DNA of 64,000 bases from contig CM074810.1 of assembly GCA_037447605.1 (NCBI GenBank), positions 310,001 to 374,000 of the forward strand, written 5' to 3'. The notes below the pieces were generated by a model. That model worked only from the letters and a program-made list of their open reading frames with translations. It ran no database searches and was not told the DNA's origin. Source of the stretch: Zygnema circumcarinatum SAG 698-1b (lineage: Eukaryota; Plantae; Zygnematophyceae). Below, one piece after another: positions 58,342-62,533 of the stretch (its first letter is position 1; each line of letters begins with the position of its first letter). The translations under genes were made by a program, and so were the position numbers.

Positions 58342-61300
58342 TTACAGCCGGGACTGGGACGAAGGGACGTTGTAGAAGGAGTCGAGAATGGCCTCCGCGA
58401 GGTACTCCGCCTTGGCCGAGGAGAGGCCCGCGAGCGAAATGCGCCCGTCCTTGGTCATGTACACGCGCCACTTCGCCGTCATGTTCTCCACCTGCACGCG
58501 CCCCCATGGCCCATGCATGCATCATGCGCATGCACGAATGCATGTACACATGCATGCCATACATGCATGCATGCCATGCATGCATGGGCACGGGGGCGTA
58601 CCTGAGGCGGGGTGAGGCCGGTGAAGGAGAACATGCCGATCTGGGCGAGCACAAAGGCCCAGTCCTTGGTCCCGCCGCCGGTCCGGTCCTTGTCCTTGGC
58701 CGCGAGGTGGCCGTACAGGTCCCTCCGCACCTTTCGGATGCGGCCCGCCATCGCCGCCATCTCCTCGCGCCACTCGCGGAAGAGCGCGCCGTCGCCCACA
58801 ACGCTCGCCACAATGCGCGCGCCGTGGACGGGGGGGGACGAGTACAGGGCGCGGGCCAGCCGCTTCAGCTGACTCTTCACTCTGGAGGGAGAGGGAGGGA
58901 GGGANNNNNNNNNNGGGGGAGAGGGGGAGTAGGAGGGGGAGGGAGGGAGGGAGAGAGAGAGAGAGTGAGAAACGAGAGAGGGAAAGAGAGAAGCATGGAT
59001 AGATGAGGGGGCTGCCCCACTCTTTATAAGTGTACGCTGAGGAAAAATTTTCATCAGAATGAGGAGAGAAGTTGTGTTCAAGCAGAGAATAGGTCGGCTT
59101 TTTCCATTGGATACGGAAACCAATCAATACCCATGCCTTGGTATTGAAGTGACCCTCTAAGTATATATCCAAAATTGAAGTAAGGAATAGACTTAAACTC
59201 TCCTGAGAATGGGACTGCTTACCTTTTTGCCACCTCTGCATCTTTCACTATCGCGTTGATAGCCCCCACCCGCTCTGAATAGAGTCCGAGATTTTTGCTA
59301 TACGATTGCGACACAAGGAGCTCAAACCCGCGCTCAACGAATCGACGAACCGATGCGGCATCTTCGTCGAGGTTTCCGCTGGCAAAGCCCTGCATTGAAT
59401 GATATGAATTTCAGAGAATATGACGACGATTACTTGGAGATGATGAATGAATGAGAGTCAAAATAGTTAAGTACATAGAATACATAGATTAGATAATGTG
59501 GGGCACACTGAGAGACAAGATAGATTATACGGATTAGGGATAAAGAATCATAAACTTAATTCGTACTAAAGCAGATAGAATCCCCCTCCCCCCCCCTCCA
59601 AAACATAAAGAATAAGGCCTGGAAAATGGTGTTAAGTTGTCCTGAATCATAAGGATTTTCTGAATACTGGTTTCCGAGACCTATGAATACTGTTAATATA
59701 AGAGTAAAATCATGATAATGCAGACTCTAACACTCACTTGATAGGCGACATCGAAGAAAGGAAGATGGTTCTTTTTCTCAATGATATCGGCGATCCCCTC
59801 CCACTGCTCCGGATTTGGATCGACTCCCGTTGGGTTGTGCGCGCATCCATGCAACAAAATAACCGAGCCGTTTGGAGCCGCCTAGAAGCGAAAAAAAAAT
59901 GGGGGGGACGGAGGGTGGGAGGGAGGAAGGGAGGGAGGAAAGGAGGGAGGGAGGGAGGGGTAAGAAACTGTTTTAAAAATGGGAAAGAAAGTGGTCTTAG
60001 GTACCATGTGATGTTTCTTTTTGCAATATAACTCACTGTGAGATCTGCGATCATTCCGCTGTAGTCAAGGCCAACCGTGGAGGGATCGAAGTAGCGATAC
60101 TCTCTCCATTCAACTCCAGCGTCGGCAAAAATGTTTTTGTGATTTCCTGTCACCCAAGTTCATATTTATGTCAAGGTCAAGTCAGAGCTTCGAAATTGCG
60201 ACGAGGGGGAAAGAGAGGGAGAGAAGAGGGAGAATTCACAAAACGAATCCTGACCTTAAAACGAATAAAGGGGGGGTGGGGGAGAGGGGGAGAGGGGAGG
60301 GGGGAGGAAGTGATAGAGAGGGATAGATAGATATAGAGAGATAGAAAGTTAGAGAGCGAGGGGGGGAGAGAGAGAGTGAGTGTGTGTGAGAGAGAGAGAG
60401 AGAGAGAGAGAGAGAGAGAGAGAGAGAGAGAGAGAGAGAGAGAGAGAGAGAGAGAGAGAGAGAGAGAGAGAGGAGAGAGAGAGAGAGAGAGAGAGAGAGT
60501 ATAGGAGGAGAGAGAGAGAGAGAGAGAGAGAGAGAGAGAGAGAGAGAGAGAGAGAGAGAGAGAGAGAGAGAGAGAGAGAGAGAGAGAGAGAGAGAGAGAG
60601 AGAGAGAGAGAGAGAGAGAGAGAGAGCAGAGAGAGAGAGAGAGAGAGAGAGAGAGAGAGAGAGAGAGAGAGAGAGAGAGAGAGAAAGAGAGAGAGAGAGA
60701 GAGAGAGAGAGAGAGAGAGAGAGAGAGAGAGAGAGAGAGAGAGAGAGAGAGAGAGAGAGAGAGAGAGAGAGAGAGTAGAGAGAGAGAGAGAGAGAGAGAG
60801 GAGAGAGAGAGAGAGAGAGAGAGAGAGAGAGAGAGAGAGAGAGAGAGAGAGAGAGAGAGAGAGAGAGAGAGAGAGAGAGAGAGAGAGAGAGAGAGAGAGA
60901 GAGAGAGAGAGAGAGAGAGAGAGAGAGAGAGAGAGAGAGAGAGAGAGAGAGAGAGAGAGAGAGAGAGAGAGAGAGAGAGAGAGAGAGAGAGAGAGAGAGA
61001 GAGAGAGAGAGAGAGAGAGAGAGAGAGAGAGAGAGAGAGAGAGAGAGAGAGAGAGAGAGAGAGAGAGAGAGAGAGAGAGAGAGAGAGAGAGAGAGAGAGA
61101 GAGCTTTACCCCAAGTGGGAGATGAGAGATAGACTGCGGCCCCAGGGAGATAGCGAGCAATAAAAGCGGCTCCAAGACGGAGCGAGCCTGTACCAGATAA
61201 GCTCTGCAGCGTAGCAACCTGCGATGCAAAAAATATTTTTTTAAACATATTTGATATGCAGTCAAAAGCCAAAACAGGCCATCGTATAAGCTTTATTCTC

Positions 61301-62533
61301 AACTGATTTTCCTTCTAAGCGACCCCCCTTCATTCGATCTGACTCCACAACATTAAGGCTGTCAAAGAAAAGAATGACAATATTGAGAAAATTTGGAAAA
61401 GAGGGGGTTCGTAGTGCACAAGAAACTGGATAATTTGAAAGGTGAATTTCTGCAATTTTAAAACTAAATATGCATTATGTATCTCGTACCCTGTTTTCAG
61501 CGATCACCGAATTTTTCTCTCCGAGAAGTAATGCCGCGGTTGCCTTGTTGAAGGCGTCCAGGCCCTCAATGGGCAAATACTGCAAGGAAACCGAGAATGT
61601 GGAAGAGAGAGGGAGGGAGTGAGGGAGAGAGGGAGAGAGAGGGAGAGTAACATTGTTAGTTATGATGTATATGATCTTAAACCATGGAAAAAGCAATAAA
61701 AAAGAGCAAACCCGTACCTCCTTGTTTTCGTCCTTTTCCAGCATCAGTCTCTCCGCCTGCAACAATAACATCAGGAAAAAAGAAACCGTTAATTAAGAGC
61801 ATTGTAGTTGGAAGGTTCCTTCATTAAGTGATTTTGCTAATAGCAATGCATGAATGTTTTAGTTTATTCAATTCTAAAAACCTGCACGCTTACTATTTCC
61901 GTGTTTTCCCAACAGATGTCTCTGTCATTCTCTGTCTCCCTCTTTCACTCCCCCTCTCTCCCCCACTGCCCTCACACTCTCTCATACTTTCTCCCACTCT
62001 CCCTCTCTCTCTCTCCCTCTCCTCCCCTCACACTGTCCCTCGCTCTCTATATCTCTCACTCTCCCTCTCCCCCTCACACCTTCTCACACTCTCCCTCCCT
62101 CTCTCCCCCTCACCCCCCCCTCTCCACTCTCCCTCCCTCTCTCCCGCACACTCCCCACTCTCCTCTCTCCCCCCTCTCTCTCTCTCTCTCCCCCTCTCCC
62201 TGACCCCCCCAGCGCCAGCTGCCCCTCTCTCCCCCCTCTCTCTCTCTCCCTCTCTCCCGCACACTTCTCCCTCTCCTCTCTCTCCCCCCTCTCTCTCTCT
62301 CTCCCCCTCTCCCTGAACCCCCAAGCGCCAGCTGCCCCTCTCTCTCCCCCCCTCACCTTCTTGACCACATCCAGCACGTACGGCTGCAGGTCCTCCGTAC
62401 GGTACGCCCCTACCCCGAGGTTCAGCTTCTGAGGGCTCGCGTCCGCACGGAATGCCTCCGTCACGCCCAGAATGGGGTCGGGCGGGGCCATGGCCACGTG
62501 GCGGAACGCGGATTGGCCCGCCTCGGAAGCCAT
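58342..62533 (-). CDS. ASP5: Second ASP5-type aspartate aminotransferase with no evident transit peptide and a C-terminal PTS1 (SRL), 9 exons
   Basis: [28 protein letters not shown]...[24 protein letters not shown] / [13 protein letters not shown] / [14 protein letters not shown] / [14 protein letters not shown] / [10 protein letters not shown] / [12 protein letters not shown] / [17 protein letters not shown] / ...[16 protein letters not shown]. Intron positions match copy 1. Confidence 0.92.
60389..61103 (+). repeat. ~710-bp near-perfect (GA)n microsatellite in an intron of the second aminotransferase
   Basis: Directly visible. It reads (CT)n on the gene's sense strand and starts right after the SSPTWG donor. 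Confidence 0.97.

Follow-up and report, generated by a model that had tools for sequence, protein, structure and literature searches.

Aspartate aminotransferase (AAT) works in several plant cell compartments, and the locus described here raises the question of whether an isozyme of the plastid lineage has been re-addressed to the peroxisome. The locus lies in a 64,000-nt stretch of the genome of the alga Zygnema circumcarinatum SAG 698-1b (contig CM074810.1, positions 310,001 to 374,000; hereafter the window, with positions counted from its first nucleotide). The window holds two AAT genes that are convergent, tail to tail, with 14 kb between them. Copy 1 encodes a protein with a presequence, whereas the predicted product of copy 2 starts beside the conserved domain and ends in the tripeptide SRL, a peroxisomal targeting signal type 1 (PTS1). 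We consider it likely that copy 2 is an active AAT of the plastid lineage that lacks a transit peptide and is imported into peroxisomes by PEX5 through its SRL end. The three parts of this reading (plastid type, no transit peptide, PTS1) are each supported by the evidence below, while import itself and the physiological role of the protein are predicted from its sequence.

The two genes were modeled as follows.

58342..62533, minus strand: copy 2, presequence-less ASP5-type aspartate aminotransferase gene (gene model and translation, PF00155 on exons, RNA contigs)
62533-62357, 61756-61718, 61579-61490, 61218-61110, 60146-60037, minus strand: copy 2 exons 1-5
59881-59738, 59389-59223, 58881-58602, 58491-58342, minus strand: copy 2 exons 6-9
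58345..58353, minus strand: PTS1 tripeptide S-R-L of copy 2 (codons TCC CGG CTG), followed by the stop codon TAA at 58344-58342
38154..44353, plus strand: copy 1, ASP5-type gene with presequence, eleven exons, 483 aa
38154-38234, 38525-38626, 38828-39022, 39531-39569, 39789-39878, 40221-40329, plus strand: copy 1 exons 1-6
42225-42334, 42454-42597, 42875-43041, 43829-44108, 44219-44353, plus strand: copy 1 exons 7-11

Both Copies Encode Plastid-Type Aspartate Aminotransferases

Copy 2 is intact, with nine exons and introns that are all of the GT..AG type, and its 421-aa product has 14 residues ahead of the conserved domain (MAPPDP) and the C terminus PSSQSRL*. In copy 1, a presequence of about 62 aa is encoded by exons 1 and 2 (38154-38234 and 38525-38626) together with the start of exon 3. 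It has a high content of Ser, Thr, and Ala and two acidic residues, and includes an FTGLR motif that is common to the presequences of land-plant and algal orthologs; the protein ends in DSYYNVER*. The initial annotation, made from the sequence alone, had described the two different C termini and two transit-peptide exons in copy 1, and the sequence and gene models agree with it. From MAPPDP until the last residues the two proteins align without a gap. Outside a block that is nearly identical between the genes (described below), their coding exons share 64-77% of nucleotides; synonymous sites are saturated (proportion of synonymous differences, pS, 0.88) and the nonsynonymous divergence (dN) is 0.15.

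The aminotransferase domain PF00155 is matched by exons 4, 6, 7, and 8 of copy 2 (profile positions 67-312), although the exon 4 match, at 19.6 bits, falls slightly below the whole-protein cut-off of 19.7, and exons 1 and 9 gave no match. All homologs found with the copy 2 exons carry PF00155. The Schiff-base lysine, K255 in the motif SQSYSKN, aligns to the corresponding lysine of chicken and mouse mitochondrial AAT, for which structures have been solved. Also present are W138, N191, D219, Y222, R289, and R389, which we take to be equivalent to Trp140, Asn194, Asp222, Tyr225, Arg292, and Arg386 in pig numbering. Among 19 aligned AATs, both copies keep 91 of the 92 invariant columns. The exception is a His to Arg replacement in KWRVYMT (copy 2 residue 381, copy 1 residue 448), which lies inside the nearly identical block, in a column that is His even in the distant AATs of the alignment. 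With its catalytic set intact, copy 2 is most likely an active aspartate aminotransferase.

The plastid (ASP5) affiliation proposed by the initial annotation was borne out by phylogeny. Both copies fall within a 31-row ASP5-type clade, including Arabidopsis ASP5 and sequences from Amborella, Ginkgo, bryophytes, ferns, and streptophyte algae, that is set apart from seven distant eukaryotic outgroup AATs with a Shimodaira-Hasegawa-like approximate likelihood ratio (SH-aLRT) of 99 in a quick tree with long outgroup branches. The only plant sequence of non-ASP5 type in that tree is from the angiosperm Drosera (P0117), and its C terminus presumably resembles the cytosolic/ASP3 type. Exon pieces are 54-79% identical to the Amborella ASP5 ortholog. 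Thus, copy 2 has the clade and catalytic residues of Arabidopsis ASP5 and its orthologs, and copy 1 in addition has their type of presequence, with its FxGLR motif. In contrast to these proteins, copy 2 has no N-terminal stromal transit peptide, typical of the ASP5 clade, in the assembled DNA, and its C terminus is five residues longer and ends in SRL rather than NV[SQK].

Copy 2 Ends in a Transcribed, Canonical PTS1

The SRL of copy 2 belongs to the canonical PTS1 set [SA][KR][LM] and stands at the extreme C terminus, directly before the stop codon. Among canonical PTS1 tripeptides, SRL> and SKL> dominate in plants, and SRM> falls in the next class; acidic residues at positions -4 to -6 inhibit import, whereas polar neutral residues there weaken only weak tripeptides (PMC9542071). 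In the copy 2 tail, NVPSSQSRL, positions -4 to -6 are SSQ, and the last eleven positions contain no acidic residue. An AlphaFold model exists for P0301, an algal ortholog introduced below that likewise ends in SRL. In this model of moderate confidence (mean predicted local distance difference test score, pLDDT, 74), the last four residues score below 50 and lie beyond the last long helix (389-405). The SRL of copy 2 probably sits on a short extension past the last helix, where it would be recognisable by PEX5.

Evidence for transcription comes from the RNA contigs of four public runs of Zygnema circumcarinatum (X1 to X4) from three studies; contigs of all four runs contain spliced joints, and they were placed on 57700-60300, the 3' half of copy 2. 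A 1650-nt contig of X4 passes through exons 8 and 9, the SRL codons, the stop codon, and the 3' untranslated region (UTR) to beyond 57700 with zero mismatches. A contig of X2 covers 57841-58406, including the SRL end; it has a 1-nt deletion at 58220, in the 3' UTR, and no mismatch in its coding part. Copy 2 is expressed and its SRL end is transcribed. Splicing-out of the tail, which the initial annotation had named as a possible objection, left no sign in the RNA contigs: in two studies, they extend past both the SRL codons and the stop.

Short Forms With PTS1 Ends Occur in Related Algae

Relatives were searched for with the stop-free frame of copy 1 that runs from intron 9 through exon 10 into the first part of intron 10, scored on exon 10 only. 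The AAT proteins of Zygnema circumcarinatum itself had no 100% match in the protein collections searched. Profiles that combined a full-length template with exon pieces retrieved nothing but ASP5 orthologs of angiosperms, we think because the template outweighs the exon pieces, and an exon 8 search of 50%-identity representatives returned mostly fragments.

Two pairs of long and short forms were found. One EukProt transcriptome encodes both P0302 (480 aa, with a presequence and the C terminus NVAK) and P0301 (413 aa, N terminus MASKFSHVSMAPPDP, C terminus APTASSRL). Likewise, Coleochaete scutata has P0305 (488 aa, with a presequence and the C terminus YNH) and P0306 (415 aa, N terminus MSTGRQSSAFEKVPMAPPDP, C terminus GPKSRM). 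P0301 and P0306 begin 9-14 residues before MAPPDP. In addition, a genomic Logan contig (L001, from SRR24581284) contains exons 4-9 of a further relative, which lacks intron 7 and ends in SVSHSKL*. P0301, L001, and P0306 are thus like copy 2 in being of ASP5 type, in lacking a presequence where the 5' end is known, and in ending in a short PTS1 extension. This extension, 5-8 residues past the conserved DS[FY]Y, is found in all PTS1 forms and is absent from the presequence forms. The identification of SRL as a PTS1 in the initial annotation therefore gains from several sides: the tripeptide is a dominant one in plants (PMC9542071), the tail is transcribed, and the related short forms end in SRL, SKL, or SRM.

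Orthology was assessed in a tree of 265 columns free of gene conversion. Copy 2 groups with P0301 and L001 (98/96), whereas copy 1 falls with P0304, which has a presequence (99/93), and less tightly with P0302. Synonymous sites are saturated between copy 2 and L001 as well, with a dN of 0.15. Given the grouping of copy 2, P0301, and L001, the duplication and the short PTS1 form predate the split of at least three algae, and the PTS1 is therefore not new to this genome. The initial annotation had taken it to be new, but the form is common to at least two related algae. The phylogeny thus supports a retargeting of the plastid-type AAT that is older than the Zygnema genome. The Coleochaete pair differs in this respect, since P0306 is sister to its own long partner, P0305 (100/99), which may reflect either a separate duplication, and thus a second origin, or homogenisation by conversion. 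The two proteins share 30-residue windows of 100% identity amid stretches of 70-90%, a pattern that suggests patchy conversion in this pair too.

Other candidates did not add to this set. Entries of about 410 aa exist for ferns, Selaginella, and Spirogloea, but they were left out of the short forms, as at least one, P0330, is a truncated call with a 472-aa cluster-mate. A metagenome scan with P0301 yielded 17 loci, none of which was a further PTS1-type gene. P0315 (414 aa, ending in SKI) appeared to be a fourth short PTS1 form and was dropped, as its cDNA (Logan contig L002:1-1448, from SRR18811677) stays open in frame further upstream, where it has an ATG and encodes a transit-like presequence of 51 residues; the called protein starts at the conserved internal Met. 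This case shows that a PTS1-like end is not always paired with presequence loss in the ASP5-type family, and that start codons in databases are not to be trusted. The L002/P0315 protein may be a dual-targeted form or a product of conversion from a PTS1 paralog.

Copy 2 Appears to Start at the Mature Protein

62531..62533, minus strand: predicted copy 2 start codon, GCC ATG G, strong context
62536..62885, minus strand: candidate 5'-UTR intron with donor GAAG|GTACAA (62885/62884) and acceptor TTGCAG|CC, from sequence only
63320..64000, minus strand: exact copy (100%, 681 bp) of 61122-61802, containing exons 2 and 3, the greater part of exon 4, and the associated introns

The initial annotation had copy 2 starting at the mature-protein region, and several observations agree. 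In the genomic sequence an in-frame stop (62581-62579) lies 16 codons upstream of the ATG, and the one in-frame ATG upstream, at 62563, is in weak context and would add ten residues. Neither a plausible presequence exon nor an open reading frame (ORF) with a donor in the right phase was found in the 776 nt between the copy 2 ATG and the next gap, and the short orthologs start at comparable positions. The TTGCAG ahead of the ATG and the lack of an ATG in the upstream exon, both reported earlier, were seen again: the acceptor-like sequence reads TTGCAG|CC, and no ATG occurs between 63122 and 62824, nor in the candidate upstream exon. A relaxed pattern for the N-terminal peroxisomal targeting signal type 2 (PTS2), the nonapeptide R[LIQ]x5HL, had no match among the 60 N-terminal residues of either copy, P0301, or P0306. 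We infer that translation of copy 2 starts at the ATG at 62533, in which case the protein would have no transit peptide.

The exact 681-bp duplicate upstream of the gene extends from the end of the window to a gap at 63310-63319, where it stops 11 nt before the end of exon 4, just ahead of the position of a (CT)n microsatellite. It is probably a redundant contig broken at the microsatellite. A 1020-nt RNA contig of X1 continues unbroken from exon 5 back through 568 more nt. This length corresponds to exons 1-4 and about 153 nt besides, and so speaks against a transcript with exons 2-4 twice. The phase-1 donor of the duplicated exon 4, hidden by the gap, would match the frame of the TTGCAG|CC before the ATG.

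Cytosolic and Plastidial Alternatives

Several observations weigh against a transit-peptide-free, peroxisomal copy 2. The gap at 63310-63319 and the duplicate fragment lie 776 nt upstream of the ATG, where exons could hide, and the acceptor-like TTGCAG|CC is in frame with a phase-1 donor. The 'ORF type: complete' of P0301 and P0306 is a database label. The L002/P0315 protein combines a transit-like presequence with a C-terminal SKI. Finally, the SSQ before SRL is polar and neutral, a slight disadvantage with weak tripeptides but not with SKL> (PMC9542071).

Some of these points could fit a mainly cytosolic AAT, in which SRL is weak, masked, or conditional and the peroxisomal pool minor or absent. 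Besides the polar neutral residues upstream of SRL, such a reading could draw on the lack of an N-terminal signal in copy 2, on the possible lack of a separate cytosolic-type AAT in this genome, and on yeast Aat2, which is described as cytosolic and as peroxisomal only on oleate (cited in PMC9309667). We nevertheless regard it as unlikely, because three relatives have canonical PTS1 tripeptides (SRL, SKL, and SRM) on extensions like that of copy 2, which would be hard to account for without selection for import, and because the presequence-bearing partners, L002 excepted, do not have PTS1 ends.

The upstream observations bear instead on the idea that additional 5' coding exons, in or beyond the gap at 63310-63319, encode a transit peptide, so that the protein would be plastidial, or dual-targeted like L002. 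The assembly is indeed unreliable in this region, with its gap and exact 681-bp duplicate; the TTGCAG acceptor is only 2 nt ahead of the ATG; and L002 is an existing combination of presequence and SKI. On the other hand, P0301 and P0306 were recorded as complete ORFs that begin beside the domain, with separate long partners in the same assemblies, the candidate upstream exon has no ATG, and the ATG of copy 2 is in strong context. Moreover, the length of the X1 contig implies just about 153 nt before the ATG, though contig cuts can fall anywhere. Taken together, we find hidden transit-peptide exons quite improbable, and continue with copy 2 as a presequence-less, PTS1-tagged protein.

The 3' Halves of the Two Genes Share a Probably Converted Block

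58366..58904, minus strand: shared block, copy 2 side, starting in the 3' end of intron 7, containing exon 8 and intron 8, and ending in exon 9 at the Val codon that precedes the tail
43806..44344, plus strand: shared block, copy 1 side, the inverted partner
58905..58914: N gap of the assembly inside copy 2 intron 7; the acceptor of exon 8 follows 23 nt downstream

Over 539 positions the two genes differ at a single base (538 identical), at 58376, where copy 2 has TTC (Phe) and copy 1 has TAC (Tyr). The block starts at the edge of the gap at 58905-58914 and stops 9 nt short of the point where the SRL tail diverges (VER* versus VPSSQSRL*). At its 5' edge, the copy 2-specific RNA contigs break 30 nt into the block (23 nt in X3). 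The 3' UTR contig of X2 breaks 30 nt beyond the single differing base, and loose ends of the block contigs also lead into the end of copy 1 exon 9 and the copy 1 stop region. Contig ends of this kind are the k-1 signature of two mRNAs that share sequence, so the block is real in the organism and was not copied by the assembler.

The gap itself does not interrupt the coding sequence. Contigs of each of the four runs X1, X2, X3, and X4 contain the joint 59223->58881 (341 nt skipped, GT..AG), so that the reading frame of copy 2 passes uninterrupted over the gap. Introns 5, 6, and 8 are likewise spliced in the contigs of the four runs, and a loose end at 60147 carries the end of exon 4, so that the exon 4-5 splice is seen too. 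Position and phase of the exon 7/8 boundary agree with those of copy 1, with zero residues lost relative to homologs, and the loose ends at 58904 hold at least 24 nt of intron sequence absent from the assembly. An assembly chimera, with exons 8-9 and the SRL tail misjoined at the N gap or the gap filled from copy 1, is hardly credible even though the identical block begins exactly at the gap edge, since RNA contigs in four runs splice copy 2 exon 7 to the start of exon 8, copy 2-specific 3' UTR is contiguous with the block end (X2) and with all of exons 8-9 (X4), the contigs break where two real mRNAs would make them break, and orthologs have an identical architecture.

The shared block is probably the product of gene conversion between inverted neighbours, repeated and GC-biased. 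Its GC content at third codon positions (GC3) is 0.93, compared to 0.55-0.62 in the remainder of both genes, and it sits on a long branch (0.41) in a tree of C-terminal sequences; together, these values look like GC-biased conversion over a long time and not a single recent event. We read the last 134 codons of the two copies, which are one Phe/Tyr codon apart, as held identical by such conversion, which would halt just short of the targeting tail. The block contains an insertion, DRTGGGT in copy 2, that is comparable to DRSGGR in P0301, and several of its residues are also common with the PTS1-type orthologs. It groups with these orthologs at 84/78; a placement with the presequence group has an approximately unbiased test p-value (p-AU) of 0.14 and so is not rejected. 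Based on the insertion, the residues, and the grouping, the donor of the conversion was probably copy 2.

Repeats Around the Two Genes

60389..61103, minus strand: (CT)n microsatellite of about 700 nt, most of copy 2 intron 4, from sequence

In both copies, introns are filled by very long pyrimidine-only tracts of low complexity, (CCCCT)n-like or (CT)n, each with a length of about 700 nt. They are located at 43115-43828 (copy 1 intron 9), 60389-61103 (copy 2 intron 4), and 40330-42224 (copy 1 intron 6), and coincide with several assembly gaps. The tract of copy 1 intron 9 has a stop-free frame that continues via exon 10 into intron 10, for 374 codons in total.

A dispersed repeat of 593 nt lies in or just past the copy 2 3' UTR (57489-58081), with an inverted counterpart at 16508-17086 (86.5% identical); at least part of it is traversed by the RNA contig of X4. 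Short CCCTAAAA-like runs, of the TTTTAGGG telomere-repeat type, occur inside copy 1 intron 6 at 42150-42200. Units of the CCCTAAAA kind are also found in X2 and X4 contigs that depart from the copy 2 3' UTR at a G/C run (loose ends, 58247). Gene predictors are likely to mis-model the locus on account of its pair of gaps, the exact duplicate, and the repeat of 539 bp.

A Predicted Route to the Peroxisome and Its Counterparts

The copy 2 gene would have arisen by an old duplication of the plastid gene. We propose that its protein is translated in the cytosol, where it would fold and dimerise, and that PEX5 would then recognise the free C-terminal SRL and bring about import into the peroxisome. 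Inside, it would interconvert aspartate and 2-oxoglutarate with oxaloacetate and glutamate, a reaction that may partner peroxisomal malate dehydrogenase in a malate/aspartate redox shuttle. Part of the copy 2 pool may remain in the cytosol, as with yeast Aat2. The enzyme in this model is ordinary; its route to the peroxisome is unlike that of flowering plants, because copy 2 lacks the plastid label in the assembled DNA and ends in SRL.

The peroxisomal AAT of flowering plants is of the cytosolic-type lineage: Arabidopsis ASP3 belongs to the cytosolic-type AAT group, a lineage other than that of ASP5. Both the Arabidopsis (ASP3) and the tomato peroxisomal enzymes are PTS2 proteins, with the motif RLx5HL (PMC9328179, PMC7710942). 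They share their reaction with copy 2 and occupy the compartment predicted for it, but their N-terminal signal is read by PEX7, whereas copy 2 has a C-terminal PTS1 and no PTS2-like motif. Import through a C-terminal PTS1 is the route of Aat2 in the yeast Saccharomyces cerevisiae. Like copy 2, for which the localisation is predicted, Aat2 is an AAT without an N-terminal signal, and it reaches peroxisomes on oleate (Verleur et al., 1997, as cited in PMC9309667); it is of the fungal cytosolic-type lineage, whereas copy 2 is derived from the plastid isozyme. In Nannochloropsis gaditana, an AAT with the PTS1 AHL> was predicted as the counterpart of the Arabidopsis PTS2 protein (PMC7710942). This alga is a stramenopile, its tripeptide is AHL> and not SRL>, and the assignment is a prediction only.

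Implications for Peroxisomal Isozymes in the Green Lineage

PTS1-tagged AATs are already familiar, and so is duplication plus relabelling as a route to new compartments. What we did not find described is such a tag on a plastid-lineage AAT among the algae related to land plants: full-text searches for papers on PTS1 aspartate aminotransferases of streptophyte algae returned none, and the entries of the relatives are unnamed.

Tentatively, a broader scenario can be drawn, which we think possible yet doubtful. In early-diverging streptophyte algae the peroxisomal AAT may have been a presequence-less PTS1 paralog of the plastid isozyme, for which land plants later swapped in the unrelated PTS2-type ASP3, a case of non-orthologous isozyme displacement. 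At the Zygnema locus, GC-biased conversion would halt 9 nt before the tail, with selection on the address alone keeping the two genes apart. A conversion block that ends just short of the signal would make these genes a clean natural case of paralogs that differ almost only in their addresses.

Peroxisomal AAT takes part in a redox shuttle that serves fatty-acid breakdown and photorespiration. If in these algae a PTS1-bearing duplicate of the plastid enzyme serves this purpose, a peroxisomal isozyme would have been invented at least twice in the green lineage. The locus would then represent a dated and testable instance of retargeting between organelles, in which a duplicated gene lost its presequence and gained a tripeptide, and it would bear on how the metabolism of leaf-type peroxisomes was assembled before plants reached land.

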